This document shows, in pieces, positions 6,262 to 56,700 of a DNA stretch of 64,000 nt (its first letter is position 1; each line of letters opens with the position of its first letter). Source of the DNA: Hormiphora californensis (Eukaryota > Animalia > Ctenophora); assembly GCA_020137815.1 (NCBI GenBank), contig CM035361.1:5456001-5520000 (forward strand), in the 5' to 3' direction. Position numbers and translations under genes: made by a program. Under the pieces are notes generated by a model. It ran no database searches and had not been told where the DNA came from. It worked only from the letters and a program-made list of their open reading frames with translations.

Positions 6262-7208
6262 TATATGAGGCATAAACTCTGGCCACTGGCGCGTTATTTC
6301 AGATAACTTTCTCCCAGCGCGCCGCTGGGAGAAGTTAGCTGGAGTTTATCCGCCGCTGGCGGATAAACTGGTTTAAATCACGACGACGATCCCGAGGCGG
6401 AGCCGAGGGAGAGGCGGAGGGGTTTAAACCTATAACGTGCCAGTGGTCAGAGTTTATGGGTTATATACCCTGCTTTAGTTGTTTATTTCAAGTATTACAC
6501 ACCAACAAGAGAGAGAACACTAATCAAAACACACAAAGAGAACTGAGAAATAGTTAAAAACACGTCACAATTGAGTGTACACTGTTTGGTAAGGGGAAAC
6601 TCTAACTGAATGGCATCCCATTAATGGGATCCCATCAGCAGTACAACTCTAACTGATAATGAACCACAGTGATGGTTCTTTCTCTGTATTCTCTCTGTAG
6701 CAGTACATTGGGCATGCCCGGGCATTGATTGATTGGGCGCGCACACAGAGAGAATACAGAGAAAGAACCATCACTGTGGTTCATTATCAGTTAGAGTTGT
6801 ACTGCTGATGGGATCCCATTAATGGGATGCCATTCAGTTAGAGTTTCCCCTAACAGTTACTAAGCAGTTGCTAAGGAAAGAGAGTGAAAGAAAGAAATAG
6901 CCTGATAAGGGGCATGTCACAAATAACACAGAGAAAGAGATAGTGAGACAAAAGGGGAGATAAAGAGAGAGTAATTGACGGAATGTGTCCTTTCTTTCTC
7001 TCCAATGTAGTGTGTAAGTGTTGCACATAGTGTTCCCTCTGTATTTTAGTAAGAACTGATCATTTACACACACTTTGAATGTTACGTAGGAGTTAAAAAT
7101 AAATAACCTGCCAGTGGGAAATAATCTGCCGCTGGACTGGCTGTTTACTGAGAGCGCGCTAGTGGGACTTCTCGCCACTGGCGCATTATTTAAGTTAGCA
7201 GGGTATAT
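6262..7208 (+). mobile_element. Non-autonomous element with internal circle-junction complement (family J1, Crypton/DIRS-like), copy 1
   Basis: Three dispersed copies share ends TGAGG(C/T)ATAAACTC...AGCAGGGTATAT with no TIR; internal 6432-6474 is the reverse complement of the joined ends. Confidence 0.75.
6593..6850. mobile_element. PIF/Harbinger-type palindromic MITE, TAA TSD
   Basis: taa|GGGGAAACTCTAAC..GTTAGAGTTTCCCC|taa; empty site TTGGTAACAGTTAC seen in J1 copy 3 (about 29330). Confidence 0.85.
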
Positions 7209-9740: not shown

Positions 9741-12700
9741 TATATCACACTCTCTATCACTGTCTTATTCCATTATATTCACCTCTTATATCCCTGATCC
9801 CGGCAGCAGGCAAAGGTGTAAGTGGGTGACCTTTCCCGCCAACTAATTTCAATTAGTTTTTGGCTTAATTTAGGTCCCTTTTTGGTTTCTAATCGCAGCA
9901 TGACATTATTTCATGATGTACTATTGTCGAAATGATGCGTTATATGAGAAACGAGACGAATTTCTGTGAAAATCGTATTTTAGACGTCATAATGACGTAA
10001 TTTGACGTAATTAGTGACGTCGTAACGACGTAATTGCATCACTATATTTTTTAATCAATACCCCAAAGGAGCTTGTAAAGTTTCATTGACCACAGTGGTC
10101 AGGAAAGGGAGTTTTTGTTCGAAAAACGTTCATTTTGCTGAATTTTTCGTCAAATTTTTGACTTCCGACGCAATTTAAGGGCTCCAAATGATAAGCTACG
10201 AAAATTCGCTATACAGTATCTGAAAGTTCAGACAATTTGCCGGTAACGATTTTTCATCAAATCAGAAATCGGAACAAGTCTCCAGGGTGCTAGAGGCGTT
10301 TGAAAAAAGTTAGTCGGTCTCGCGCAATGACGTCACTCGTGACGTCATTGCGCGCGTCATAGGTAAGATGGAGAGTCGCCACCCAGATGGGTACATGCAC
10401 GAGACAATTGTCTGTCGAATGCCGCTTGGTTTAAGGTCGTACGATGTCTGGTTCGTCTTAAACTGGGACCAAACGTAAGGTAACAAAGCGTCTATACATC
10501 TATCTATCTATCTACCGCGTGGGCCAATAAAAAGGGAGGGTCTTAAATCTTAGATTTCTCGGGCAGCTTAATTTCAATGGTTCTGAAATTTTGACACAAT
10601 GTTGTTGAGCTTATGCCAGATATGTGTACAGAGTTTCAAGTCCAAAAATGCAGAAATTCATTAATGAACCGAAATTCCTTTTTTTATAGTTAATTGGAGG
10701 TTTTCCCTTGTTCCAAGTCGATTTGGATCGCAAAATTGCAGCCACTCAATAGTATTAACATTTTTCAATGGCAATCTGAAATTTCATTGAAAATGAATAA
10801 AGTTTAGTGGGTGAAATTAATGAATTAAAAATGATCATTTTTTCAAAAAACATATTTTCGCTGAAAATGAGAAATTTGCACTGTAGAGATGAAATCAAAA
10901 CCTAGCTGGGTTATGCTTTAATCATTTAAGTTCATTCTGGTATGAAAAACTGTTAAATTAAAAAAAATTAATTTTTTTAAATTTTCAAATTTTCGTTAAT
11001 AACTGCATAAATTAACATTTAACCGATAGTCCATTAACAAACCGTTAGTTGAGACATTAGTAAATCGAAACCTTGCTAATGGAAGCTTACCAATGCCTAT
11101 ACTGATTGGTAACAACAAGCGTAATGTGACCTCCATGTAAGCAAGAAAAAACGTAATCAGGTTGTTACAAAATCATGTTAGCAAGATTGCAATATGTCTC
11201 GAATTTCCTTTGTTGTACCCAGTATCACATATCCGGCGTGGAGTGCAAAAGAGGTCCCTAAAAAACGAGAAAAAAAACGAATAGAGAAATCCTACATTGG
11301 CTTAAAATCATGAATTTAGGGTCATTAATGAATTTTTGCATTTTTGGACTTGAAACTCTGTACACATATCTGGCATAAGCTCATGAACATTGTGTCAAAA
11401 TTTCAGAACCATTGGAATTAAGGTGCCGGAGAAATCTAAGATTTAAGACCCTCCCTTTTTATTGGCCCACGCGGTATGTATCAACCTAGTTATCCCCACA
11501 CTGAATTTCCTGTTTTGGGGGTGGTGTTATAACTTTTGAACAAAAAGAGCTAGCCACTTGAAATTTTTACCATCGATGGAGGTCTACAAGAAGCTTCTAA
11601 GTACAAAATTTCAGCTTCCTAGCTCTTCCGGTTCGGGAGTTATGGCATGTCAAAAAGTGCCAAAATGGGCTAAAAGTATGAAATAACTATATATACGCTG
11701 TGAGCAAGCGGGCCGTTTTTGGGGGAAATTTTTTTCGGGGGATCATGGATGGGGTCACCTTTGCGCTTACCAGCGCAGTGATGTATAGTAGTAGTATGTA
11801 TAGATATGTAGTAAACACTATACAGTCGGACCCCGATTTAGTGGCCCCCGATTTAGTGGCCCCCGATTTAGTGGCACCCCGATTTAGTGGCAGGATTTTC
11901 CCCCCGAGGATGCCACTAAATCGGGGTCCGATTATAATTGCAAAAGAAGCTTTAATTATTTCAATTAATTAAATATATACTTTGTATAACTCCTATAATC
12001 AATCACTTAATTAATATATCGCATTCTACAGGCGAGGTAAAGACAGAATCAAGCACTGCAGCTGATTCCATTTCCAAGACATTCCTCAGTGAGCTAACTC
12101 AAAGTGAGAATGATGGAGCTACTGTATACCATCTTCCTGGCATAACCAACTGGAAGACAGAGGTAGGTTTATATAAAATCACACCACTGGCAGATCACAC
12201 CACGAATACTAGGTAGATCAGATACTAAATCAGATACTAAATCAGATACTAAATCAGATCATATATAACTATAAAACAGTATTCCTTTGTCTATTCGTGA
12301 TTATCAATTTCAGCTGTCGCTCGATTTCACGTGGGACTCAACCGTTCCTTCTGAGTGTGGAGTGATTTGGTGGTTCACCAATGATGACAATGATCTATTG
12401 GGAAAGATTACAATCAATGCCGTAAGTTGCCATGGTTACAATCAATGCCGTAAGTAACTTACTAAGTTGCCATGGTTACTGCAGCTGCAGTATTTATTGG
12501 ACTAGCTATGATATTTTGACACTTTGTTCCCTGCCAGAAATAGATGGTCCATATAGGTCAATATTAGCTCAATTAACGGGGCTATATCGTGCAAAATTAC
12601 ATTGTGGATTGGGCGATTTATTGATCAATACAGGTCCGTATTGTGCCCAATATATTGGCCAAATTGAGCAATATACCGTGGAATATATTGAACAAATGTG

Positions 12701-15700
12701 GTCCAAATGCGCGCGCATCCGTGGTGCTGAAACGTTGTACTCTCAACATCTCAAATACTGTGCGCGCTCCCGTACCATGAGGAGCGGCGTCCCAAAATAC
12801 GCTGGCCGACTGCTGCACCCAATAACGATTTGAAACCAACGTTATACTTGTTACTTTCGTAACCCTCGCTCACGCAAGCCGGCTCAGCGTTTACAAAAGA
12901 GGGTCGCGCAATCTGACAACGTTATACGAACCAATTGTCGTATGCACTTACCGAGTGTAGGAAAACTTCCACTTACTGAAAATTGTACTTGCCATGTTCG
13001 AACCTCTCTTCCCCTAATGGAATAAAAGTTTTTTATTTGGATGTAGTTCTTGTTTAATTGGTTGCTGTGTGTTTGTTAGAAATGTGGTAAAGAAGCACAT
13101 AATATGATATATAATATATACATATACAGTCGGACCACGATTTAACGGCACCCTTGGGGAAAAGGGTTTTGTCCGTTAAATCATAATTGGGGAGACTGGA
13201 GAGTAATGGGGATGCAAGAGTTAAAGAACTGCAAATCTATGAGTTCCCCAGAAAACAATAAACTATAGATTGTTTTGTTCAAACCACGAGCTTTATTGGG
13301 TCGATCTAGGCAAAAACATGACGTACAACGTACGTACCTTGCTGATTTCTACATGTGTCATTGCCTGTCTGTACCCGATAATACTGAAAATCACAAGTCC
13401 TCCCAGAATAGTCGTGGAGCAGTTGACCACCGTGATAATGATACTGGGAGGAACTTGTTTTAATTTCAGAAACTGACAACCAATCAGAAATCTGTATTTA
13501 GGTCACGTGACTGGTTATCAACCAATCAGGGACAAGTATTTCCTGAATCCGGCAGCTCCTTTAGCTAACCTGTCTCGAATGATGTTATCACAGTTCTTGG
13601 TGAAAGACACGATCTAGCTCCAAACCCGATACCCAGTGAGTAGAAGATCTGAGAGGCTGCCGCAGACCAGACACGGACATCTAGCAGTTGTTGGGCTGAA
13701 ATGGGATTGGAAGTGATAATAGTAACCATGGTAACCTTGGACCAGACACGAACATCTAGCACTTGTTTGGGCTGGAGGGAGTGGGAAGTGGTAGTTAGTG
13801 TTACACCATGGTATCAAAATGGTAACACCATGGTATCACATTGTGATAATCACAATGGTATCACAATGGTAACACAATGGTAACACAATGGTAACACAAT
13901 GGTAACACAATGGTAACACAATGGTAACACAATGTTAACACCTGCACCATGGTAACACAATAATTACCTCAGGTGTAAGAAAGTAGACAATACCGTCATT
14001 GGCTCCCTCCAGGGTAACTCCCCGAAACAACAGAATATAGGGACTTTTAACCCGACCCTTGTTATATATGTCTCGTTATTGCTTGGGTTACCATCTTCGT
14101 GTGCATTGCCCGGGGTATCGCAACTACTGGAAAAGTAAGTCAGTTCTAGCTGGTCTCTGATTGGCTGATGACCAGTCAGGTGACCTAAATAACGAGTTCT
14201 GATTGGTTGTTTAATGCTATCTCTATATTCAGGTTGTATTATTTCTCGGCAACTGCACCCTACGTTGTTCTGATTATTCTGTTGTTTCGGGGAGTTACCC
14301 TGGAGGGAGCCAATGACGGTATTGTCTACTTTCTTACACCTGAGGTAATTATTGTGTTACCATGGTGCAGGTGTTAACATTGTGTTACCATTGTGTTACC
14401 ATTGTGTTACCATTGTGTTACCATGGTGTTACCATTGTGATACCATTGTGATACCATGGTGTTACCATGGTGTAACACTAACTACCACTTCCCACTCCCT
14501 CCAGCCCAAACAAGTGCTAGATGTTCGTGTCTGGTCCAAGGTTACCATGGTTACTATTATCACTTCCAATCCCATTTCAGCCCAACAACTGCTAGATGTC
14601 CGTGTCTGGTCTGCGGCAGCCTCTCAGATCTTCTACTCACTGGGTATCGGGTTTGGAGCTATCGTGTCTTTCACCAAGAACTGTGATAACATCATTCGAG
14701 ACAGGTGAGCTAAAGGAGCTGCCGGATTCAGGAAATACTTGTCCCTGATTGGTTGATAACCAGTCACGTGACCTAAATACAGATTTCTGATTGGTTGTCA
14801 GTTTCTGAAATTAAAACAAGTTCCTCCCAGTATCATTATCACGGTGGTCAACTGCTCCACGACTATTCTGGGAGGACTTGTGATTTTCAGTATTATCGGG
14901 TACAGACAGGCAATGACACATGTAGAAATCAGCAAGGTACGTACGTTGTACGTCATGTTTTTGCCTAGATCGACCCAATAAAGCTCGTGGTTTGAACAAA
15001 ACAATCTATAGTTTATTGTTTTCTGGGGAACTCATACATTTGCAGTTCTTTAAATCTTGCATCCCCATTACTCTCCAGTCTCCCCAATTATGATTTAACG
15101 GACAAAACCCTTTTCCCCGAGGGTGCCGTTAAATCGTGGTCCGACTGTATATGTATATATTATATATCATATTATGTGCTTCTTTACCACATTTCTAACA
15201 AACACACAGCAACCAATTAAACAAGAACTACATCCAAATAAAAAACTTTTATTCCATTAGGGGAAGAGAGGTTCGAACATGGCAAGTACAATTTTCAGTA
15301 AGTGGAAGTTTTCCTACACTCGGTATAGGTAAGTGCATACGACAATTGGTTCGTATAACGTTGGTTTCAAATCGTTATTGGGTGCAGCAGTCGGCCAGCG
15401 TATTTTGGGACGCCGCTCTCCATGGTACGGGAGCGCGCACAGTATTTGAGATGTTGAGAGTACAACGTTTCAGCACCACGGATGCGCGCGCATTTGGACC
15501 ACATTTGTTCAATATATTCCACGGTATATTGCTCAATTTGGCCAATATATTGGGCACAATACGGACCTGTATTGATCAATAAATCGCCCAATCCACAATG
15601 TAATTTTGCACGATATAGCCCCGTTAATTGAGCTAATATTGACCTATATGGACCATCTATTTCTGGCAGGGTTGTTTCCAGTTTCAATAATTTTGTTGTT

Positions 15701-16842: not shown

Positions 16843-19318
16843 CCCGCAACTTCTCCGTGCCCCTGGTATCACCAGGGCTGAGTGTACTGAGTTCAGAGCC
16901 CTTGTGAGACTAAGAACTTCCGATGCCACTTGCTTGCCCCCGATGTTGCCCCCGACGTTGGTTACGAAGTCACCCCTTTTAATTTTTATTGCATACCTCC
17001 ACAAGCAATAATAACAGATGAGTAATTTCATTACCAAGTGCTGCCGTATGGGCCGGCTGGAAATCATTACGATCGTAATGTATACGACTACTTTGTAGTA
17101 ATTAGCATTTATATTAGCGATAATTAGCGATAAATGATAATTACACAGCGATAATTAGCGATAATTAAATCACTCAGCATCCGTCTTTCGATTTTCCTCA
17201 ATTGGCCCCTGTCCCTTAGTTAAAAAATTCGACTATATTATATGTGTGCTTTAATCGAATTTTGTTCTTTTTACTAAAACTACTGTCCCCATCTGTCAGA
17301 GCATTGACCCATTCTCGTTTCTCTCAAATCCCGTTCTGCACGCGGAGCGCGCGAGAACTATGGTCAGAGCATTGGCCTGACAGGTCCCCATTATTATAAA
17401 TGTCCCCATGAATAAGCATCGATCTCTCCACAGGTCAACAAGTTGATCTTGGATTTCTCATTGACCTCTCTGTTGCATCTGTAGCAACTAAATGTAAGTC
17501 ATAATTTTAAATACAATTTTAATTGAAATTTAGTTCTATTCAATTAAAGCACAAATAAATATTGTTATATTACAGTTGCATTTGCTATCACAAGCACTGA
17601 TAACGTACAGGCGGAAAACAACAGGGGAAAAGGGACTAAAGAACAAAAAAACAAAACGGGCGAGAGGGCACATAAAAAATTTCTTTTCCCCCCATTTTCC
17701 CCCCCGGAGAGGAGAGGGCGAAAAGGGACATGCCCCCGGGGGGGGGGGAAAAAAAAAAAACCCCCGGGGGCCCCCCCCTTTTTTCCGGGCCCCCCCCCCC
17801 CTTTTTTTTTCCCTTCCCCCCCCCTCCCCCCCCCCCCTCCCTTTCCCCCCCTCTCCTCCCCCCCTTTCCCCCCCAGAAATTGTCCAGGGAGGTTCCCCCT
17901 TTCCCCATTACTTTTCCAGTGTTTGGTCGAAAAGGGCCCCAAATCAAGGGGAAGTTTTAGCTTTGCGGAATATAAAAAATTCCTAATTTAGACCTTAAAA
18001 ATGCGCGTTTTAATTGTAAAAATTATAATATATGAGGCATAAACTCGGGCCCAAGGGCGCGTTTTTTCAGATAACTTTCTCCCAGCGCGCCGCTGGGAGA
18101 GTTAGTGGATTTTACCCGCGCGGCGGAAAATTTTTTTTTAAAAAATCCGACGACGACCCGAGGGGGAAACCCCAGGGAGGGCGGGGGGGGGTTTTTAAAC
18201 CAATAACGGCATGGTCAGAGTTTAGGGGTTATATACCCTGCTTTATTTGTTTTTTTTAAAGTTTACACCCAAAAGAGAGAGAACACTAACAAAACACACA
18301 AAGAAATGAGAAATGTTAAAAACACCTCACAATTGAGGTACATGTTGGTAACAGTTACTAAGCAGTGCTAAGGAAAAAGGGGGTGAAAAAGAAAAGGGCC
18401 CCATAAGGGGGGAGTCACAATAACACAGAGGAAGAGATAGTGAGACAAAAGGGGAGATAAAGAGGAGAGTAATTGACGGAATGTGTCCCTTTCTTTCTCT
18501 CCAATGTAGTGTGTAAGTGTTGCACATAATGTTCCCTCTGTATTTTAGTAAGAACTGATCATTACCACACACTTTGAATGTACATAGGAGTTCAAAATAA
18601 ATAACCTGCCAGTGGGAAATAATCTGCCGCTGGACTGGCTGTTTATTGAGAGCGCGCTAGTGGGACTTCTCGCCACTGGCGGGTTATTTAAGTTAGCAGG
18701 GTATATAATTCTATAATTCTATAATTATAATTCACACATACGTCAACTTTTTAGGTTTTCAATATTATGTATTTATATTGTTAATGTAGCTATCTTACAA
18801 CGCTATATGACAACTTGATTGATCAATTATTTACAGCCGGTAACTTTTGAGATCGGTTCTGGTGCCAGTGCAACCACTGTGCTCAGCAAATCTACACCAA
18901 CCACGGATGTTATTTCGGCTGCTTCTGATACTGGCTGGTACTGCGTTAACTCCGACTCAGGTTTATACATAACTAGAGAGCCCAGGCAAAAGACCCAAAA
19001 CTACTCTCGCCCCCTACTGACTCCCCCCACCCCTATCGAATCCTCTCAATATCTACTGACTGCTCTCGCCCCACATTATTGAATACTCATTCCTCAACAC
19101 CCTCCTTCCCCCCGCCCCCGCTATGTTGACCAACTCACCCCATAACCCCCTTACAGCCAGTTGGAGTCCTATAACATTCCCCCCCGTCTCCATGTCTCTC
19201 TCTCCCCCTCTCCATCTCCCTCTCTTTCCCTGTCCCCTCTCCAATGGATAGTCTCCATCTATCCCCTATCCCCCTCTCTCTCTATCCCTCTCACCCCATC
19301 ATTCGATTCCCTCCCCCC

Positions 19319-25513: not shown

Positions 25514-28500
25514 CTCTCTCTCTCTATCTCTCTTCGCAAACTCCCTGATTTAACCCATCGATGATATCCGTAACCCGGGCCGGGCAAAGGTGTCAGTTTG
25601 ACAACAAAAGTGGTCACCTTTCCAGCCAACTAATTTCTGTTAGTTTTTGGCATAATTGGGGTATATTTTTGGTATTTTCTGATGTGAAATACGATGTAAG
25701 ACATGTCTAGACGTAGCAGAACGTGTAAAGACCGTCAGGAATCGCTAAAGTACGAAAATTTCAATTTTGACGTCATTGTGACGTCATAGCGTGACGTCAC
25801 GACGTTATAACGTCATGCCAGGGAAGTATTATTATTATGCTCATCTAGATAAATAGGCTGACCAAGTTTGAGATCGATTGGACTAGATTTGAGGTCGCTA
25901 TGGTGAAAAACGTACTATCGTCATATCTATTTTCATACAGTCTTAACACTTCAGACGCGATTTGAGACCCTTAGAACTAGAGTTTCACAAATTCGCGGTA
26001 TAGTTTCTGAAAGTTTAGACGATTATCTTTTATAAGTGTGGTCTCCGTTTCTCAATCAGAAGCCGTCTTCAGGGTGTAAATTGAGCTCAAAGAAATTTGG
26101 TTGATTTGAAAAATGTCTTATCTTTATGACAGTTTGTTAAGACGTTCTGGTTGGACCTAGAATATGAAAACTATTCGTCTACACAATTCAAACGATTATC
26201 TTTCGAATGCAACAAACGAGAAGTGTCTATCTTATGTCGTTTTCTCTCAAAAACGATTATAAATTTGGTAAAACAGCGTCTATCCATAGATACATAGATA
26301 CATAGATACATAGATAGACCCGGGACATTTATTGCTTTTGGCACGATGCTGTATCTCTAAAACTAAATGAGATAGAGACTTGCCCTTTTAAACTACAGTA
26401 GAACTAGACTATGTGACACTGTATACCAAATTTCAGACTGATTGGTGCAGTGGGGGCCTCACTATGGGCGTCGCAAAATGCCATTTTTGGCTAAAAACTG
26501 AAAAAAGTTATTACTGCATTCTGGCACACGCGGCTGGGGGGAGGGGATGGTCACCTTTGCGCTTGCCAGCGCAGTGATATATGTAATAATATAATATTAT
26601 AATGTCACAACTGACACCGGTTTATAATGTCTTGTCTGTCAAGTGTATTGATCTATACAGATATATTCAGTACTGAATACTCGTATCAAAAATGAGAACT
26701 TCTTTCAGTAACACCTTTCATATTATAATTACTAGAGGAAATACACGACAAATGACATACCATAATACAGCACTGTCATCAAGTTAACTAAACTTAACAA
26801 ATCAAAGTTAACCGATACAAATATGTTTTAGTGGAAATTGATAAGCCGATTGTACTAACGGGGGATTCTGTTAAGTTTACTGCTGTATGTACGTTCACTG
26901 AATCGAAATGTAACGAAGGAAATCGTCTCCAATGGTAAATAATTATACATATTACATAATAAATAATACATTATACATAATACAATACTAGCAGCATCTA
27001 ATTAATTATCAATGGTAATTTATACCAACTTACAGTGGTATTTATACTAAACTAAAAGCTACTATAATAGTAGCTTTTAATTAGCAATAATAGCTAATTG
27101 GGGGTTGTTTTTGTTAGTGCCTCATATAACAAATTAAAAAATAATAAATTATATATTTTAATTGATTAACAATAATCGTATCCAGGTCGATTGGTTCAAC
27201 AGCCCAGACATCCAGTGAGGGGATTGTGGAAAACGATTACAATAACAATCAACGATCCACTGTTTTCACCTCAAGCCCCGTTCCTGGGTCAACGACCTAC
27301 AACACATATAAGATTAAACTTGGAGGTAATACAATATATATGAGGTATAAACTCTGGCCACTGGCGCGTTATTTCAGATAACTTTCTCCCAGCGCGCCGC
27401 TGGGAGAAGTTAGCTGAAGTTTATCCGCCGCTGGCGGATAAACTGGTATGAAACCCGATAGTTGATTTATCAGTCGTTTGAACATTTTACGCGCACACGT
27501 TAACTGCGAGATGGGGGATTTAACACCCTGCTCGCTCTTTATCAGACCAGTGCCCATTTTCACGCGTTTCTCTTCATTTCCATAACATGCGTGTAAATTT
27601 CCAAGTAATGAAAATGTGTGTAAACTAGTGTCTGACGGTGTATAAGGTCCAAATGAGGCACGGAGCTTTTCTGAATCAGCTTTTCAAGACGAATCCAATG
27701 CAACCGGAATTAGCTTTCTATCTTATCGGGAAGGTTCGGTTCACTCACACTCATTTTGAGTCATTTTTGCCGCGCGAGCCAATCAGAGGCCAGGATTTCG
27801 AAATCCAGCCCTCTGATTGGCTCGCGCGGCCAAAAATGAAAAAAATGAACCACACCTTCCCGACAAGATAGAAAGCTAATTCCGGTTGCGTTGGATTCGT
27901 CTTGAAAAGCTGATTCAGAAAAGCTCCGTGCCTCATTTGGACCTTATACACCGTCAGACACTAGTGTAAACACACAGTTCTGTCAATAACAGAGAGGGGA
28001 ACACATCTGCAACACTTTTCAATGTTATCTCTCTCATCAAGAGGCAAAATAGTCGCATTCCATTCGTTTCTCTCTCTCATTCTCTCTTTTACTGTTCAAT
28101 ATCTCTCACTGTGTGTTTTGCCCCTAATCTTTCTCTCTCTTTCTCAAACATGTTAGGAACAGTAGACACTAAGTCTACACACATTTTGAGAGTGTCTGTT
28201 GACTATTTGCCAGTAGTCCTTGTGTGTTACCCCTTGTGTTGTGTCTCTTATTTGTGTGTAATTACTATCGGGTTTCATAAACTATGAACGTTTGTTAGCC
28301 TATCGCGTTATAGGTTTAAATCACCTCCCCCTCACCCTCGGCTGGCGCCTCGGGATCGGCGTCGGGATTTAAACCAGTTTAATCGCCCTGCCGGGCGATT
28401 AAACTCCAGTTGGCTGTCCCCAGCTCGCGCTGGGAACAGCCAACTTGATAACGCGCCAGTCTACAAACGTTCATAGTTCATTTAAATCACGACGACGATC

Positions 28501-31500
28501 CCGAGGCGGAGCCGAGGGAGAGGCGGAGGGGTTTAAACCTATAACGTGCCAGTGGTCAGAGTTTATAGGTTATATTCCCTGCTTTAGTTGTTTATTTCAA
28601 GTATTACACACCAACAAGAGAGAGAACACTAATCAAAACACTCAAAGAGGACTGAGAAATAGTTAAAACACCTCACAATTAGGGTCTGAATTTCGGACGG
28701 ATTAGGGTCTCAATTTCGGACGGATACCGTCTAGACACCGTCCAGACGCCGTCCAGACGCCGGGACGGTACCGTCTAGACACCGTCTAGAGACCGTCTGA
28801 TACCGTCGCAACACCGTCTGATACCGTCTATAACCCGTCTAGAGACCGTCTGATACCGTCTATAACCCGTCTCAAGCAATTTCGGTACCGTTTTTAGCTG
28901 ATTTCACCGAAACCCGTCCAGACGGTATACCGTCTAGACGCCGTCTAGACGCCGTATGCCGCAAATGAGAAATTGCCCTGACGGTCATCAACGCCGAAAT
29001 AGGGAACAACGTGTTTCTTAATGTGCTTTTCAATACGAATCCAACGCAACCGGAATTAGCTTTCTATCTTGTCGGGAAGTATCGCCCCCTGACACCCCCA
29101 AAAACCTCAATTTCATGCGCGCGAGCCTATCCTTACCTGTAATTATAGGCAAATTGGCTCGCGCGCAGCCCTTTTGCCGGTTTTTGGGGGCGATACTTCC
29201 CGACAAGATAGAGAGCTAATTCCGGTTGCATTGGATTCGTATTGAAAAGCACATTCAGAAACATGTTGTTCCCTATTTCGGCGTTGATGACCGTCAGACC
29301 CTACTCACAATTGAGTGTACACTGTTTGGTAACAGTTACTAAGCAGTTGCTAAGGAAAGAGAGTGAAAGAAATAGCCTGATAAGGGGCATGTCACACATA
29401 ACACAGAGGAAGAGATAGTGAGACAAAAGGGGAGATAAAGAGAGAGTAATTGACGGAATGTGTCCTTTCTTTCTCTCCAATGTAGTGTGTAAGTGTTGCA
29501 CATAGTGTTCCCTCTGTATTTTAGTAAGAACTGATCATTTACACACACTTTGAATGTTCAAAATAAATAACCTGCCAGTGGGAAATAATCTGCCGCTGGA
29601 CTGGCTGTTTATTGAGAGCGCGCTAGTGGGACTGGCGGGTTATTTAAGTTAGCAGGGTATATATTACAGTCGGACCCCGACTTACCGGGATGCTCGGGAG
29701 AAAGGGTTTTGACCGGTAAATCGGGGTTCCCGGTATATCGGGGTGAAACACTGTTAATTTTTTATTTCGGGGGAAAATTATCCTCCCGATAAATCGGGGT
29801 TCCGGTAAATCGGGGCCCGGTAAATCGGGGTCCGACTGTACATATATATTGTTTTAATCTCATAATGAATAGAATTAACTTAATTGTTACAAGTTATTAA
29901 CTGTCAATTATTTCCTCCAGATGCCACAACCGATGAAAATATAGCCCCTTATTATACGCTTTACGGTAAGTATTTAATGATTTAATAAGTTAATAAGTTA
30001 ATTATTAACAAACTAGCGCACCCATTCCAAATGAAAATTCCAAATAAAAATGTGTATGACGGACTGTTACAGTTTACTTATGATAACTTTTTCAGAGCTG
30101 CAAAACTATGTATCCACATTTAGTATAGATGATGGAGGTGGTAAGTGACTACATCTGTCTAGTACCTATGATATAACTTGATAAAATAGTAATTATTTCG
30201 TTGTGATATATAGTTGGTATAATGCTAATAATTGGGATACACTAATTAATATAAACCTTTCAGAATACTACATTTCTGACCAGCAAGATACCTCTTCAAT
30301 AAAGTGTGATGCGGTCCAAGCAGGTGCTGTTACCAGCCCTCAATCAATTAATGTGGAAATCTATCGTAAGTTTTATATCATTCACGCTATAGGTATAACC
30401 ATGGTAATAATGTAAGAATGCATTTGTTTAATTATAAAGTATAAACACTTTATTATTTCATAAACCATTTATGAATATCATTTCAAACAGGTCGACCATA
30501 TCGGGGTGATGTTATACCGATCAAAACTGCAACCTATGGTACAGGGACAATGAATTCAAAAATTACTGACGGCGATTATGAAACTAGTTTTCTGATTTCA
30601 ACTTCTGCTGAAAAAAAGTGAGTACTGTTATAGTACACTACAGGAACCGACCGAATCAGGAAATTCTGGTCCCTGATTGGCTGATATCCAGTCACGTGAC
30701 CTAAATAACGAGTTGTGATTGGTGTCGGTCGGTTCATGGTACACTATTATAAACCACCCCCTGCTAGCTTAAATAACCCGCCAGTGGCAAGCAGTGCCAA
30801 TGGCGCGCTCTCGATAATAACTAGCCAGCTCAAAATCGTGCAAAAATTGATTTGTCAACAAATGAATCCCTTTGTATCCGCCGTTGTTACAATTGAGAAC
30901 GTTGGGCTCTACCCTACCAGAAGTTAGACTAACGTGGACATCGTCAAACGAATGTTTAACGATCGATATCGATCGTTTTAGTCGGTCGCTGGGCCAATCT
31001 GGGCGACCGATCGACCAGACAAAATCGATCGACGGACGATCGACGGACGATCGGTTTCAGTGCGCGCGTCGCTATTGGAAACATATGAGTTGCGCCATAG
31101 AACTAATATCTAGAGCTCCGCGCGTTACTGCTATGTCCCCAATAACAACAAAGTCATGAGTTGGACGCTGGCGGCATGTGCGTCTGATTAAGTCCCTAGC
31201 TGTACGTCCAGATCACTACTTATTTTGATTCAAATCAATCGAAACTAGATGTGCTTTGCACTTATTCAAGATAACACTATCACTTTTTTTTCAGGTGAGT
31301 AAGAGCTGCTGAAGCGCAAGGATTCCAGTGATAAATTTGATATTCCCGGTCCCGACTGGAAAGTTGAAACTCCCTGGCTCGTTCCGATCATTTTGAGTAA
31401 GCGAAGCATCTCACTTGTAATTGCTTCCATATCGCTACCAGCATTACAATTAGCATGTATGCCAGTGCAACGTAGATCATGAAATTGACATTCTCTACTA

Positions 31501-34500
31501 TCAGTTAATTACTTGAGTGTTTCAGTATTTCGCTAGCATATTTCAGGGACATTTCATTTGTGTACAAACACCTGTTTTTGGCACTATTTTCCTGGCCTAT
31601 GTGAAAAGTCAGGACCACTATTGGTGCACGGTCGTGCCCACAGAAGGAGTGCTTGGATCATAAAACCGGTTTTAAGTTAACTAATGCATATCCAAAAGTG
31701 TCTGTAGCTATTTGGGTGATGTTCTGACAATCCAATCACGTGTTTTGACCAAAAAAGTGACAAAAAGGAGGATCTGAACACAGCCCTTATATGAAGGGTT
31801 AGGGCTATGAAACTTCTTGGGCTGTTTAAACATGTGAGACGATCTGCAAAACAGGGTATTTTGGTACTGTTTCCGACCCATATTGCTTGCTCTCACCTTT
31901 CCCTAATTGGGCAAATCTCGTCAAGTGATCACTTCACAAGCAAAAATATACAGTACAGAGGCCCCTTGATTATCTTGCTCTAGTTAGATGACGACAAAAG
32001 AGAGAAACTATTCCAGACAATGCAAATTTGGACAGCTCAAGAAGTTTCATAGCCCCAACCCTATATATAAGGGCTGTGTTTAGATCATCCTTTTTGTCAC
32101 TTTTTTGTCACTTTTTTGGTCAAAACACGTGATTGGATTGTCAGAACATCACCCAAATAGCTACAGACACTTTTGGATATGCATTAGTTAACTTAAAACC
32201 GGTTTTATGATCCAAGCACTCCTCCTGTGGGCACGACCGTGCACCAATAGTGGTCCTGACTTTTCACATAGGCCAGGAAAATAGTGCCAAAAACAGGTGT
32301 TTGTACACAAATGAAATGTCCCTGAAATATGCTAGCGAAATACTGAAACACTCAAGTAATTAACTGATAGTAGAGAATGTCAATTTCATGATCTACGTTG
32401 CACTGGCATACATGCTAATTGTAATGCTGGTAGCGATATGGAAGCAATTACAAGTGAGATGCTTCGCTTACTCAAAATGATCGGAACGAGCCAGGGAGTT
32501 TCAACTTTCCAGTCGGGACCGGGAATATCAAATTTATCACTGGAATCCTTGCGCTTCAGCAGCTCTTACTCACCTGAAAAAAAAGTGATAGTGTTATCTT
32601 GAATAAGTGCAAAGCACATCTAGTTTCGATTGATTTGAATCAAAATAAGTAGTGATCTGGACGTACAGCTAGGGACTTAATCAGACGCACATGCCGCCAG
32701 CGTCCAACTCATGACTTTGTTGTTATTGGGGACATAGCAGTAACGCGCGGAGCTCTAGATATTAGTTCTATGGCGCAACTCATATGTTTCCAATAGCGAC
32801 GCGCGCACTGAAACCGATCGTCCGTCGATCGTCCGTCGATCGATTTTGTCTGGTCGATCGGTCGCCCAGATTGGCCCAGCGACCGACTAAAACGATCGAT
32901 TACTCGACGTCGTTGACCGACGTGACGATGTCCACGTTAGTCTAACTTCTGGTAGGGTATAGTTTAAAGTAAAAGGTTCAGGAGTTATTAAGAATCAATT
33001 GATTTCAGGTTGAAATTTGAGTTTGATGGAGAGTATTTCGTTAACGAGGTCCAAGTGGTACTATTCAACAAAGATAATACAGCCTCCTACCCCTCGAACC
33101 TACTATGTACTGTCAGCACAGGATACACCACCGTCTGCAAGGTTATTATTTAGTATATGGGCTCATGTTATATTATAGATTGATCAGAATTAGTACTGTG
33201 TATTTTCAGACCCTAATTACAAACAAGATGAAATTTCTGACCCTATTTCCTTACCCTTACTAAACCCACCGTGTTAAAGTGTTATATATATATACATACA
33301 TATGTATATAATCAATAAACCCGGGTTTATATGTAGCGGGTCACCCGCTAGGGTGATTCGCTACACCATATACAACCCGACTCGTGAAGCAGGGAGGGTG
33401 GTATATGGTATAAAACCCGACCAACAAGCAAGGATTTATTGATTACAAGTTTTAGCGGCAAAAACATCCTTGCTTTTTATAGCGGCGGGGTATATCAGAT
33501 AAATTTTCACCCGCTGATATTTATATATATATATATGTAATTTAGTCCAAAAACCAATTAAATAAATTAGTTTGGATGCCCGGGCCCATTTGGTGTCACG
33601 GGGGTAAAACCTTTAGGCTACTGTCATAAATAATGGCATATCTCGTTTATTTTTCAATACACATCTCTCGTTTTTCTTTTCTCTTTCTCTCCATCCCTCT
33701 ATCTCTTTCTCCCTCTTTTCCTCTTTCTCCCACTCTCCACCTCCATATTTCCCTCTTTCTCTTTTTTTCTCTCTTTTATTTATATTTCTCTTACTATCTC
33801 TCCGTCTTTCTCGATATATCTCACTCTTTATATCACAATTTGTTTTTCTTTATCTCTCTCGATATTCATCATTTATGACAGTAGCCTAAAGGTTTTACCC
33901 CCGTGACACCAAATGGGCCCGGGCATCCAAACTAATTTATTTAATTGGTTTTTGGACTAAATTTCTGTTTTTTTTGGTGTAAAAAAGAGACAGCTTTTTT
34001 CCTGATTTTATTTTGGGATCTGAATAAATAAATATGCATATAACGGCTAAACGGTGGGAGTTACGAACTTTTTTCTGGGGGAAGACCCCCATAAATCGAC
34101 TATTTTGAGTCGGAATATACCCAAGAAAACGTTTTAGGGTCAGCCGAAGTGGAAATTTTAAAGGGTATGCATAAAATCATGAATTTGAGCATAAATATGC
34201 AAATAACGGCTAAACGGTGCGAGATACGAATTTTTGTCCGGGGGATGACCCCCCACAAATCGACTATTTTGAGTCGGAATATACCCAAGAAAACGTTCTA
34301 GGGTCAGCCGAAGTGGAAATTTTAAAGAATATGCATAAATTTGAGCATAAATATGCAAATAACGGCTAAACGGTGCGAGATACGAATTTTTGTCCGGGGG
34401 ACGACCCCCCACAAATCGACTATTTTGAGTCGGAATATACCCAAGAAAACGTTCTAGGGTCAGCCGAAGTGGAAATTTTAAAGAATATGCATAAATTTGA

Positions 34501-50700: not shown

Positions 50701-53700
50701 GCCGCTTATAATGGTAGAGACCGATACGTGAAACAAAACACTATTAGGGGAGTCCACGATTCGGTCTATTTCCTGCTTTAGTCCAGCTGGATACGTGATC
50801 CATTGCAGCCTTTTATTGCAGCCTTTTATTGCAGCCTTTTAATGCAGCCTTTTATTGCAGCCTTTTATTGCAGCCTTTTAATGCAGCCTTTTATTGCAGC
50901 CTTTTATTGCAGCCTTTTATTGCAGCCTTTTATTAGGAGCGAAGTTCTACTCACCTGCCAATTAATTAGTAATTAGTAATCATTTCACAGCCTTGCCTAG
51001 CTTAGCCCTTGATGACATGGACACCTGTGCGAGATCGATCCCAAAAACAATTTGGCAATGGCGCCAAACCTAACCCGAAACCATATCATAACAGACACAT
51101 GTTTTCAGAGTGATACAATATTCTACCCGTCTGTATACAACTCATACCTCTTTACTGGATACTATGAGGTAATTACTGTTAATTATATATAATCACAATT
51201 GATAACCATTAAATAAATATCTATTAATTAATGAATATGATTAGTAATAAATAATTTTCTTCTTTTACGACAGAGTGGACGATTCTCTGATGACTCCAAT
51301 TTCGAACAATTCCAAAATCTAAACGCTGAATCAGAATCCCTAATCTCCATCGCAGGTAAAATCATGATCACCTGCTGTTTCACTCCAATTATTCCCTAAT
51401 TAGTTATTAATTACCTCATACATTTCTAGTTGATTCCAATTATTCCCTAATTAGTTATTAACTAGCGCACCCATTGGGTGCGCCTCAAGTAAGGGCTTTT
51501 TGATAACCCACCCGGCTTCGCCGGGTGGTTCTTTTCGCCCCTTTCCACGTCTATAACACGGTTGCCATGGCAACTGAATTGATAACTATGGGGACTGGCA
51601 TGTTGAAAGTCATTCGAAAATATTAACAAACTTCCACTGGAAGTTCCAAAAGTGTGAGCAACAGCTTTACAGCTTTGGTCACATGAAGTGTTTTATGAAG
51701 GAGCAGTCTGTCGCTTAGATACCGCTGAACGAACGACCACCACTTCGACGTCGTTCATCTCCAAATTATAATAGAGATTCTCTCATTAATTCCTAGTTAA
51801 TTCCAATTATTCCCTAATTAGTTATTAATTACCCCATTAGGTGGATCTGGTACCTCGATAATTAACGTCCGAATTTACGGCCATAACTCTGAGGACAACC
51901 AGGATTGCTACACTACCACCAGTGGAACATTCCTCATAGACTTTGATGCTGTCTACAAACTGTCAGCGGTTAGTTTTGTTGTTTGTTTTGTTGTTTACTC
52001 AAAAACTTTTGTTGAATACTGGTTCAACCAAATAAGCGCACTTTATTTTGAGTCACCTGACACCATATTATGGGTAGTATGAAAGATTAGGTCGTGCGCG
52101 CCAAATGGCGCCATATGGCGCCAAATGGCGCCATCATATTCGCCAAATGGCGCCACGTGGCGAACAAATGGCGCCATTTGGCGCCAAAATGTGGCGAGTG
52201 CGCACTATCGCCAAATGGCGCAATTTCTGGCGCCAAATGGCGCCATTTGGCGGTAGTCCCGCCATGGCGGTAGTCAATCGCCACATGGCAAAATTTTGGC
52301 GCCAAACACGCCATATGGCGGTCGGGAGTGGCGCCACACCACGGGAGTGGCGCCATACATGCTCTGGCGGTACTTGGATGGCGGTGGCGTGTGGCGCCAT
52401 TTGTTGAATATGGCGCCAACTTATGGCGCTAACAAAAAAACCGATTTCTGGAGTGGCGCCACACCACTGGAGTGGCGCCACATTTTAAAAACTCTGGCGG
52501 TATGCAAGTGGTATGTGTGTGGCGCCAACCGTTGTCGTGGCGGTAGTCAAACGGCGCCACACATTAGCGCCACATTAATGGCGCCACATGATAATGGCGC
52601 CACATGATCATGTGGCGCCATATGGACATTGCCGAGAATGAGCCCTTCCGTGAGCGCATTTTTTGAAGTTGTCTGTGTCACCTACATAAGCCTGTCAAAA
52701 CGTGTTTCGACATAGAACTCACTAGCGGCAAGCCAATTCCGGTTGTAAATTCTAGGTATAGGCCCCCTGAACATAAAAAACCAAAATGCCAGTCTCAATT
52801 ATTTGGGGGAAGGTGTGTAATTAGCCCCTAATTGATTGGTAATTGAGCATATAAGGAGAAAAACGCTGTATCTACCCTTAGGAAAGGAGTAGAGATAAAA
52901 TTAAGGGCACCAAAGTGTTCAGTGTCCTCGCCTTAGTGGGGGTAGGTGCCAGAATAAAGTCTTTATCTCATCTGGTTAATTGGATAATTGGATAATTAGA
53001 CCTGCACATAGCCGTTTGCTGGCCATATGGCTATATATAACCATGTTAGGAAAGGAGTAGAGACACAACCGGGGGCACTGAAATGTTCAGCGTTCTCGAA
53101 TTAGTGGGGGTAGGTGCTGAAATTAAGTCTCTATCTCATCCGATTAATTAGATAATTGGATAATTAGGTTTAAACATAACCGTTTAAGGGTACGCTAACC
53201 AAAAATTTTTTTCGAGTGCAGGGAAATCTCTCACCGTAGGGTTGTAGGCCATGCCAAGGAGACCTCAAATATGCAATTTGAGCTCTCAAGTCGAATTCAT
53301 ATTTTTGCTACAGCGGTTTGAAAAATGAACTGAAAATAAGTTTTTGGCATCTTAAAAATACATTTGTAAAGATGGGATCATAAAAATTTGAAGAGGACAA
53401 AGAGGTGAGTAGCCACAAAAATTTTTTTTGAAATCCGAGCTGATTTTCGGTCCTGAGATGGATTTCTTTTTTTTGACTTTAACGCCATATTTGGCCAAGT
53501 TCCGAAAATATGTGAAAGCTGTAAATTGGTCAAAAGTTGCGTCTAACAATTATCTAAGTGGCCATAAATTTTGGGCGTGTCCTTATTTAAGATAAGCTGT
53601 ACAGAGTTTTTTTTCTGAAAGCCGTCATTTCAGAAATAAATAAATTCCCTGTATCTCAAAAACGGCTGATCGTAGAGACCTGAGACTATGCTTAAACGAT

Positions 53701-56700
53701 TCAGAAGGTCCGATTTTGGGGGGGTCTTCTGAGAGACATTTTGCTCTTACTTCAACCGTTTTTGCTGTAATTGCGAAAAACAAATTCTATGAAAAGGGCA
53801 AAAGCTAAACTCCAATATCCTGTAATTAGGGAATTTTAGCTAAGGAAGGACCGAAACTATGGAAAAATATGTAACAAGCTAATTCCTTCACTATTTGGTC
53901 CATATGGGTCCCTATAATCACCAAAAACAAAATCACAAAAAATCCACGATGGCGAAGATGGGTTTTTGTTTTTCGCAATTACAGCAAAAACGGTTGAAGT
54001 AGGAGCAAAATGTCTCTCAGAAGACCCCCCTAAAATCGGACCTTCTGAATCGTTTAAGCATAGTCTCAGGTCTCTACGATCAGCCGTTTTTGAGATACAG
54101 GGAATTTATTTATTTCTGAAATGACGGCTTTCAGAAAAAAAACTCTGTACAGCTTATCTTAAATAAGGACACGCCCAAAATTTATGGCCACTTAGATAAT
54201 CGTTAGACGCAACTTTTGACCAATTTACAGCTTTCACATATTTTCGGAACTTGGCCAAATATGGCGTTAAAGTCAAAAAAAAGAAATCCATCTCAGGACC
54301 GGAAATCAGCTCGGATTTCAAAAAAATTTTTTTGTGGCTACTCACCTCTTTGTCCTCTTCAAATCCACAAATTTTTTCCCTGCCCGGGTGAATGCCCGAA
54401 GGGCATTCACCAGGATGATGTTTTTAGCACGCACGTGCTAAAAAGATCATTCAGGGTTTAGAAATCAGCAGATTGTGTAGTTAACTAAAATGTCCGTCCG
54501 TCCGTCTGTCCACCGTTACACATAGCAACAAAGTCTGCTCCTTCATAAATCTTTCAACTCACACTTTGTTGATGCAACAAAGGAAATGATTAATACGCAT
54601 TGTGGCGCGCAATTACTCACTCGTATCACTTCCTACTTTCACCTGAAATCACTTTGGGTACCCTACAGCCGTACCATGACGTGGTAGCAAGTCTTCCAAG
54701 CATGAAACTACTATCACACAATAATTGCAAGTGACTGGTGCTAAGATGACTGAGGCCTGAGGGTAAAGGTGAAGCGCTAATTGGTCACCAACTAGGGTCT
54801 CCTAAGCAACTGTCTTGGTTATCATAGCAACTGCCTTGGTTACCATAGCAACCACCCTGGTTACCATAGCAACTAACATCGTATCAGCCAAAAATTGCTC
54901 TTAGAGTGCAAAATTCATCGGAAAATCTGAATTTGAAGCTCATTCATCAATTTTACACCCATCTGGGGCAGGGAAACACCGCATTATGAATACATAATGC
55001 AATAATTCTTGTTATGATCCTATCTTTACAAATGTATTTTTAAGATGCCAAAAACTTATTTTCAGTTAGCGTACCCTTAAGGCTATTATATGGCTATGGA
55101 GGTGAGACACTATGTGTTGAGACGCGCACAATGCGACAATGCGCCTCCATAGCCACGTAGGAATTGTTTAGAGACTTTTCATTGGTGCAATTTTGTAGGC
55201 AATGGCCAAGTTATGGGGGGTCGACGTCGTACTTTTAAGCTCCATCTTCAACCGTTTAGCCGTTATTTGGCTTTAAAGGTGCTCTAAATTAGCAAAAAAC
55301 GGTAAAAAGCCCACATTTATGGCGCCATACAAGAGTGGCGCCACATAAATGTTGGCGCCATCCAGTATACGTTAGCGCCAATAAGGATGGCGGTGGCGGT
55401 AGTCAAACAATGGTAGTCCCGCCATGGCGGTAGTCAATCGCCACATGGCAAAATTTTTGCGCCAAACACGCCATATGGCGGTCGGGAGTGGCGCCACACC
55501 ACGGGAGTGGCGCCATACATGCTCTGGCGGTACTTGGATGGCGGTGGCGTGTGGCGCCATTTGTTGAATATGGCGCCAACTTATGGCGCTAACAAAAAAA
55601 CCGATTTCTGGAGTGGCGCCACACCACTGGAGTGGCGCCACATTTTAAAAACTCTGGCGGTATGCAAGTGGTATGTGTGTGGCGCCAACCGTTGTCGTGG
55701 CGGTAGTCAAACGGCGCCACACATTAGCGCCACATTAATGGCGCCACATGATAATGGCGCCACATGATCATTTGGCGCCATATGGACATTACCGAGAATG
55801 AGCCCTTCCGTGAGCGCATTTTTTGAAGTTGTCTGTGTCACCTACATAAGCCTGTCAAAACGTGTTTCGACATAGAACTCACTAGCGGCAAGACAATTCC
55901 GGTTGTAAATTCTAGGTATAGGCCCCCTGAACATAAAAAACCAAAATGTCAGTCTCAATTATTTGGGGGAAGGTGTGTAATTAGCCCCTAATTGATTGGT
56001 AATTGAGCATAAGAAGAAAAACGCTGTATCTACCCTTAGGAAAGGAGTAGAGATAAAATTAAGGGCACCTAAGTGTTCAGTGTCCTCGCATTAGTGGGGG
56101 TAGGTGCCAGAATAAAGTCTTTATCTCATCTGGTTAATTGGATAATTGGATAATTAGACCTGCACATAGCCGTTTGCTGGCCATATGGCTATATGTAGCC
56201 ATGTTAGGAAAGGAGTAGAGACACAACCGGGGGCACTGAAATGTTCAGCGTTCTCGAATTAGTGGGGGTAGGTGCTGAAATTAAGTCTCTATCTCATCCG
56301 GTTAATTAGATAATTGGATAATTAGGTTTAAACATAACCGTTTAAGGCTATTATATGGCTATGGAGGTGAGACACTATGTGTTAAGACGCGCACAATGCT
56401 ACAATGCGCCTCCATAGCCACGTAGGAATTGTTTAGAGACTTTTCATTGGTGCAATTTTGTAGGCAATGGCCAAGTTATGGGGGGTCGACGTCGGACTTT
56501 TAAGCTCCATCTTCAACCGTTTAGCCGTTATTTGGCTTTAAAGGTGCTCAAAATTAGCAAAAAACGGTAAAAAGCCCACATTTATGGCGCCATACAAGAG
56601 TGGCGCCACATAAATGTTGGCGCCATCCAGTAAACGTTAGCGCCAATAAGGATGGCGGTGGCGGTAGTCAAACAGTGCCATATGTTGGCGTTACAAAATA

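Follow-up and report, generated by a model that had tools for sequence, protein, structure and literature searches.

A 64,000-nucleotide stretch of Hormiphora californensis DNA (assembly GCA_020137815.1, contig CM035361.1, positions 5,456,001 to 5,520,000 of the forward strand), here called the window, carries at positions 27448-28481 on the plus strand one copy of a short mobile element, which we termed F1. We consider F1 to be probably a non-autonomous transposon of the Helitron2/Helentron type (HLE2), similar to the HINE and DINE-1 elements and moved in trans by an HUH Rep-helicase (RepHel) via a single-stranded, probably circular, intermediate. An original prediction, made from the letters of the window, had described F1 as an element carrying an inverted internal copy of its own circle junction, with a layout outside any described class and a suggested link to the tyrosine-recombinase elements of the DIRS and Crypton kinds. 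This internal copy is the known termination signal of HLE2, an asymmetric terminal inverted repeat (ATIR) followed by a hairpin, here with the two helices abutting exactly. The repeat-plus-hairpin layout is known, but the branched hairpin of F1, which abuts the ATIR helix and is predicted to bring both ends of the element together, is unusually large.

The end and internal sequences of F1 were found where the original prediction had placed them. The 5' ATIR, ATGAAACCCGATAGT (27448-27462, plus strand), starts at base 1 of the element, and its exact reverse complement, the 3' ATIR ACTATCGGGTTTCAT (28264-28278, plus strand), lies directly upstream of the hairpin, with which it shares an AT. The right end, ACAAACGTTCATAGTTCAT at 28463-28481, has a minus-strand match at 28277-28295 with one mismatch, and the layout of F1 can be written as [L ... 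rc(L)][rc(R) ... R], rc denoting the reverse complement. A 32-mer of the joined ends matched 28264-28295 on the minus strand with one mismatch, while none of 100 shuffled sequences did. The predicted 31/32 match holds only when the ends are overlapped by the shared AT, whereas the real junctions keep both ATs, leaving a 2-nt gap plus the one mismatch. Self-comparison revealed no long terminal repeats, and the claim that F1 lacks a terminal inverted repeat (TIR) needs qualification only in that ATGAA/TTCAT, the 5 nt at either extremity, are inverted and that the 15-nt asymmetric repeat is present.

Single-strand DNA folds of the canonical F1 unit paired nt 1-15 with nt 471-485 (27448-27462 with 28264-28278 in the window) in both the minimum free energy (MFE) and the centroid structures. 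The terminal hairpin is a branched structure of 205 nt (28277-28481), the 3' arm of which is the 3' end of F1 itself. Its outer stem begins one nt past the ATIR helix and ends 3 nt short of the 3' terminus, with three inner hairpins between its arms. The 5' arm of this stem occupies 28277-28312 (core 28277-28295, with a bulged extension to about 28312) and shows compensatory pairs relative to a sister family, F2, described below; the 3' arm (28448-28481) ends at the terminus ...CATAGTTCAT, the last 3 nt of which (CAT) are unpaired in the fold. The inner hairpins, on the plus strand like the arms, lie at 28313-28375 (closed by GGTTTAAATC/GATTTAAACC, from the fold and the comparison with F2), 28376-28405 (AGTTTAATCGCC...GGCGATTAAACT, two pairs compensated between F1 and F2) and 28408-28445 (AGTTGGCTGTCCCCAGC...GCTGGGAACAGCCAACT, compensated at several pairs, one of them by a CG-to-GC change within F1). 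The MFE of F1 was -120 kcal/mol, as compared to -64 +/- 5.6 kcal/mol for shuffled sequences (z = -9.9), and 14 of the 67 predicted pairs of the 3' module show compensatory change between or within F1 and F2. The proposal that a single strand of F1 brings its own ends together through the internal complement is thus what the fold predicts. In one F1 subfamily (L025, L026, L028, the first copy at L029, and L030), one pair of the outer stem was altered on both sides, C to A in the 5' arm and G to C in the 3' arm, without restoring pairing, and this position may be read by a protein instead of by pairing.

Copies of F1 were searched for in the source genome (110.7 Mb, 45 contigs), and at least 45 aligned copies were found on 13 large contigs, all of them sharing both ends. 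Most of these join query positions 1-178 straight to 517-1034, giving a canonical unit of 688 bp. While the predicted interval of 27448-28481 has exact ends, its 1034-bp length is thus non-canonical, and includes a nested palindromic miniature inverted-repeat transposable element (MITE) of 338 bp at 27626-27963, flanked by an 8-bp target site duplication (TSD), GTGTAAAC, at 27618-27625 and 27964-27971. This MITE, with arms of about 170 nt and a TSD of hAT-like length, is a secondary insertion outside the F1 family, and a joint in a contig from a public run, skipping 346 nt, matches its absence. Relatives of the nested MITE were seen at 29014-29261 of the window and at locus L020.

End-specific patterns counted 182 5' ends and 176 3' ends of F1 genome-wide, and the 14-mer common to both repeats occurred 375 times, amounting to about 187 ATIR pairs. 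F1 is therefore a family of about 180 copies in which the two 'halves' always occur together. The start and end bases were identical in all of 29 further full copies that were extracted, and of 30 copies 18 showed complete ATIR pairing (15/15) and ten more 14/15, so that the internal complement of the 5' end is kept at 14 or 15 positions in 28 of them. Seventeen copies reached an identity of 99% or more with that of the window, and many copies of the family are 99-100% identical, indicating that the activity of F1 is recent. Covariation inside F1 was scarce, the copies being too alike, and a single copy (the second at L029) compensates a repeat change, T15C being accompanied by A to G. In F1, scans for tRNAs and Rfam families came back empty, and those for open reading frames (ORFs) gave none that is meaningful; nothing reached the Rfam gathering score, and the sub-threshold matches were to miRNA models on palindromes, chiefly those of the nested MITE. 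F1 is, as predicted, a non-coding and non-autonomous mobile element, with copies that share exact ends. An F1-like piece was also seen in contigs under another organism label (run X12, organism C), with the same 5' boundary (27447/8) and with 16 differences and 9 gaps across about 170 nt; the F1 family may, judging from this likeness, be shared among related species.

The boundaries of the window copy were defined by an empty site in J1 copy 1 at 6361-6379, which reads GGATAAACTGGT^TTAAATC (the caret marking the point of insertion or junction) and reveals that exactly 1034 bp were inserted without duplication, one T being ambiguous. Contigs from public runs that skip exactly 1034 nt are in line with this site, and so the boundaries drawn from it by the original prediction were confirmed to within that one T; these contigs are probably empty paralogous copies of J1, not alleles. 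No TSD was seen at F1 insertions, either in 30 copies with flanks or at the empty site, which bears out the earlier claim. Among the same 30 flanks, position -1 was T in 29, position +1 was T in 17, A in ten and G in three, but never C, position +2 was T in all 30, and position +3 was A in 21 and G in nine. The target of F1 is thus T^DTR (D being A, G or T, and R being A or G).

The genome also contains three perfect head-to-tail junctions of F1, ...TTCAT^ATGAAAC..., in which both ATs are kept; these genomic tandems amount to roughly 1.7% of the copies (3 of about 180). In a joined-end circle the junction would read ...CATAGTTCAT^ATGAAACCCG. T^DTR fits the junction of F1 at its 5' end (T^ATG, and T^ATA in F2), that at its 3' end (CAT^DTR) and that between tandem copies alike, so that a single nicking and joining specificity accounts for every F1 junction. 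One motif at all junctions is as expected of an HUH enzyme, while for a tyrosine recombinase a crossover core common to the sites would be required, and none was seen. F1 was also found to abut the 5' end of F2 without a spacer (...GTTCAT^ATATACCCTGC) at C3:3832787 (L027) and at C3:3319301. At C1:3338981-3340350 an F1 copy apparently lies, by coordinates alone, inside the hairpin module of another F1, near a site homologous to that of the window insertion into F2 (CCAGT^TTAA). As targets, F1 seems to favour the 5' junctions of resident copies and their hairpin loops.

The window copy of F1 lies inside the hairpin loop of a copy of F2, the repeat called J1 above, and this host, the second copy of F2 in the window (27340-29662), is interrupted within its hairpin module at ACTGGT^TTAAATC. 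F2 copies occupy 6265-7208, 18032-18706 and 27340-29662 of the window, all on the minus strand, and belong to a 680-bp family of about 330 genomic copies (about 334 5' ends). In element orientation, F2 starts as T^ATATACCCTGC... and carries a subterminal repeat, ...GCAGGGTATAT, followed by 4 nt and by a hairpin module homologous to that of F1; its 3' end is ...GCCTCAT^, followed by ATA or TTA. Head-to-tail arrays of F2 were found at a spacing of about 679 bp, for example at C3:9172311/9172990/9173669. Both families have a 5' AT, a 3' TCAT and a T^DTR target, and the hairpin base of F1/F2 is CATAAACT...AGTTYAT. In contrast, their inverted repeats occupy the same position with wholly different sequences (ATGAAACCCGATAGT/ACTATCGGGTTTCAT in F1 and ATATACCCTGC/GCAGGGTATAT in F2), and the ATIRs thus covary at the family level, as a comparison of sequences. 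The covariation of ends and internal complement that the original prediction had asked for is therefore found between F1 and F2, and in the compensated hairpin pairs, but hardly inside F1. The junction complement of F2 is interrupted (GGTT against CCTCAT). What the two families conserve, on comparison of their sequences, is the repeat plus hairpin rather than a precise junction copy, and the precise abutment is specific to F1.

The layout of F1 matches the published anatomy of HLE2, contrary to the earlier view that it belonged to no described class. HLE2 elements carry ATIRs of 8-16 nt, the 5' one lying 0-2 nt (or, as a looser limit, 0-4 nt) from the terminus and the 3' one directly upstream of a 3' hairpin; they insert between T and T without a TSD, and short non-coding derivatives of them (HINE, DINE-1), which have simple repeats in the centre, are abundant (PMC3627910, PMC4067079, PMC11417382). 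F1 has a 15-nt terminal repeat from base 1, and a subterminal 3' repeat that ends at 28278, directly before a hairpin starting at 28277, albeit one whose 205-nt size is far beyond the described range. The internal junction copy is thus the 3' ATIR together with the adjoining 5' arm of the 3' hairpin, which is the defining anatomy of HLE2, its HINE and DINE-1 derivatives included. F1 is further like HLE2 in inserting after T without a TSD, in being short, non-coding and high in copy number, in having a CT-rich simple-repeat core and, together with F2, in forming head-to-tail tandem arrays. It differs in that its hairpin consists of an outer stem and three inner hairpins over 205 nt, as compared to roughly 10-40 nt in described elements; in that the 3' arm of this hairpin reaches the last bases and the helices abut, whereas a 3' tail of 8-60 nt is present in described families; and in having no 5' hairpin on its 5' ATIR, a 5' AT instead of T or TC, and T^DTR as its target.

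Pairing of the ATIRs was proposed by Bao and Jurka as the end signal of rolling-circle transfer (PMC3627910), and F1 could be envisaged to move in such a manner. Rep would nick the 5' junction of the donor, T^ATG, and remain bound to the 5' end while the helicase peels the strand away. The emerging 3' repeat would pair with the 5' end, the terminal hairpin folding next, and the 3' cleavage site (CAT^DTR) would then lie on a 3-nt flap beside the Rep-bound 5' end. This position of the flap would mark the end of the transfer and favour joining into a circle, with the junction TTCAT^ATGAA, again T^DTR; the circle would be reopened and inserted at another T^DTR site.

The genome does encode candidate enzymes. 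PF14214 (Helitron_like_N, the Helitron Rep domain) gave 22 genome matches, many of them in open frames of 2000-3500 aa. DUF6570, a marker of HLE2 according to HELIANO (PMC11417382), was present in one of five Rep-region frames scanned (C12:6572522-6576118), and the closest named relative of the protein of this element is one from Bolinopsis microptera. The DUF6570 element has a relative on C2, the ORFs of the two being 66% identical and their 3' terminal 101 nt 91% identical. These shared 3' modules (L049:5623-5728 and L053:5620-5724, both on the minus strand), for which ATACC[T/A]ATGATCTCAT would be the complement of the 5' end, fold into 16 unpaired nt and an outer stem of 11 bp, closed at the 3' end, that surrounds two inner hairpins; within the stem, GAGTATG/CATACTC has undergone a compensatory change to GAGTGTG/CACACTC. 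As predicted by folding, the 3' module of the DUF6570 element resembles that of F1 and F2, as a smaller structure. Diverged tandem repeats of about 84 bp precede the 101-nt module, and a third copy of its first 16 nt was seen at C1:4076448. The 3' boundary of the Rep group without DUF6570 (L047/L048) displayed no recognisable terminal structure, and a metagenome scan with the RepHel alignment yielded only relatives that were 25-36% identical over the best segment. A generic scan for other elements of the form 'T^L...rc(L)+hairpin' was swamped by a palindrome-rich background.

Several observations weigh against the assignment of F1 to HLE2. The searches made revealed no autonomous element with the termini of F1 or F2, no F1 end lay near any Rep locus among the matches listed, and a comparison of F1 and of the F1/F2 3' module with 28 Rep-containing loci, by BLAST and nhmmer, gave only CT-rich low-complexity matches. 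The 5' ATIR predicted for the DUF6570 element (ATGAGATCATNGGTAT) was not found nearby, its only exact matches being its three 3' copies. In F1 itself, a strict T^T target was seen in only 17 of 30 insertions (57%), the 5' end is AT and not the T or TC of HLE2, and the length of the hairpin is 5-10 times that described for HLE2 elements. The equal frequency of 5' and 3' ends reveals no 5' truncation bias of the rolling-circle type, and F1 has no 5' hairpin, its first 40-70 nt folding no better than shuffled sequences (z = +0.4 and +0.9). A hairpin on the 5' repeat is listed by Bao and Jurka as the second feature of Helitron2 (PMC3627910), although it is variable among HLE2 elements (PMC4067079, PMC5148889); the hairpin of F2 at nt 25-53 does not involve its repeat. 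Two long-spaced ATIR pairs were considered as autonomous forms of F1, one of 4.9 kb at C2:143288-148223 (L043) and one of 0.95 kb on C1 (L044), and were rejected since both were spaced by nested insertions with no large ORF; the long coding copies with F1 ends that the original prediction had proposed to look for were thus not found among the pairs examined.

A less probable reading, to which we would give tentative weight, is that HLE2-type termini have evolved into a true self-splint, or that F1 and F2 owe their movement to an enzyme that has yet to be connected with termini of this kind. As a self-splint, the 5' end as well as the 3' cleavage site may, in the predicted fold, lie at a nick in one continuous helix. 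The structure of the DNA, beyond recognition by protein alone, may then set the end point and drive closure of the circle, by analogy with the guide logic of IS608 but in a eukaryotic relative of the Helitrons.

If the enzyme were not a RepHel at all, F1 and F2 would represent a single-strand transposon lineage served by another HUH nuclease, or by logic like that of IS200/IS605, and their likeness to HLE2 would be convergent. This is raised because no RepHel element was found with the ends of F1 or F2, and the hairpin module, which far exceeds any described HLE2 terminus, as well as the departures in the 5' AT, the T^DTR target and the absent 5' hairpin, speak in its favour. However, no candidate for the alternative enzyme was seen, while intact RepHel frames are numerous in the genome and include at least one of HLE2 type, the one RepHel 3' end examined has a similar branched-hairpin layout, and the targets and 5' features of HLE2 are known to vary (PMC5148889). 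We therefore regard convergence as unlikely. F1 can also be read formally as two TIR-bounded units side by side, in which case it would be a chance composite of two cut-and-paste MITEs, A (27448-28278, with 15-bp TIRs) and B (28277-28481, with 19-bp TIRs). Since its 'halves' are always together, the numbers of 5' ends, 3' ends and ATIR pairs being equal and no solo A or B being seen, chance juxtaposition was effectively ruled out, and this reading is extremely improbable. Neither A, nor B, nor the whole of F1 has the TSD of a cut-and-paste MITE, just 5 terminal nt of F1 are inverted, the empty site removes A and B as a single piece, and the two-part layout recurs in F2, where the ATIR differs.

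The tyrosine-recombinase link that had been suggested at the outset would make F1 a miniature derivative of a DIRS-like or Crypton-like element, with the internal complement templating or splinting a circle and the recombinase inserting it. DIRS elements encode reverse transcriptase (RT), RNase H and a tyrosine recombinase, and the internal complementary region (ICR) of DIRS1 is thought to aid a circular intermediate. F1 does resemble DIRS1, as generally known, in that an internal segment is complementary to both termini side by side (31/32 with the 2-nt overlap); it also lacks a TSD, and its tandems could come from a circle integrating into a resident junction. In contrast to DIRS, however, F1 has neither long inverted or split direct terminal repeats, nor RT/RNase H, nor a tyrosine recombinase. 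PF00589 matched nothing in the genome (110.7 Mb) at E<=0.001, while all control genomes matched, although this is weak evidence as eukaryotic tyrosine recombinases are divergent and can escape the profile. Moreover, junctions and targets share no crossover core beyond the degenerate T^DTR, the real junctions are 2 nt off the internal site, F2 lacks an uninterrupted junction complement, HLE2-type RepHel genes are present, and the definition of HLE2 already covers the whole layout. Thus a DIRS or Crypton origin of F1 appears very unlikely.

Two other systems are of use for comparison. The IS200/IS605 elements, including that of IS608 TnpA, transpose strand-specifically, as single strands, by means of an HUH enzyme, without a TSD, and have subterminal hairpins, cleavage positioned by pairing and a joined-end circle; they occur in bacteria, carry a small hairpin at either end, and have as their target a tetra- or pentanucleotide lying 5' of the element. 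F1 would, by analogy, be like them in lacking a TSD, in having a hairpin near its end and in DNA-DNA pairing at the cleavage sites; it differs in that no TnpA-like gene is linked to it. FoHeli1 and FoHeli2 of Fusarium oxysporum are like F1 in their ATIRs, their non-T^T target (TNAT^A in FoHeli1, which is of Helitron2 type) and their recent activity, and joined-end forms, circles in the case of FoHeli1, were detected by outward PCR (PMC5148889). In contrast to F1, they are autonomous elements of 5-6 kb with hairpins at both ends, an ATTTT 3' terminus and a 3' repeat 38-51 bp from the end (PMC5148889).

It is poorly understood how the 3' end is recognised and the circle closed in Helitron-like elements, most of all in Helitron2/Helentron. 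F1 offers a clean natural test case, as it is very young and short, has one cleavage motif everywhere, and has a duplex of its 5' end stacked on the terminal hairpin, and it would be a convenient substrate for the model of termination by ATIR pairing. If F1 is an HLE2 element, the 'MITE-like' repeats of this genome, J1 included, would have to be annotated as Helitron2-type. Tools that expect TIRs of 11-18 nt and a small stem-loop may miss terminal hairpins of about 200 nt.

Foldback and palindromic elements are exceptionally abundant in the genome, and the window contains two very long near-perfect inverted repeats, at 30968-32900 and 12529-15671, with 799-nt arms of 100% identity and a 335-nt spacer, and nested arms of 319-665 nt at 99%, respectively. 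A GC-rich block at 56500-59600 (about 50% GC) consists of units of the GGCGCC/TGGCGCCA type with a period of 10 bp and contains many long imperfect inverted repeats, and related units were seen at 52100-52250.

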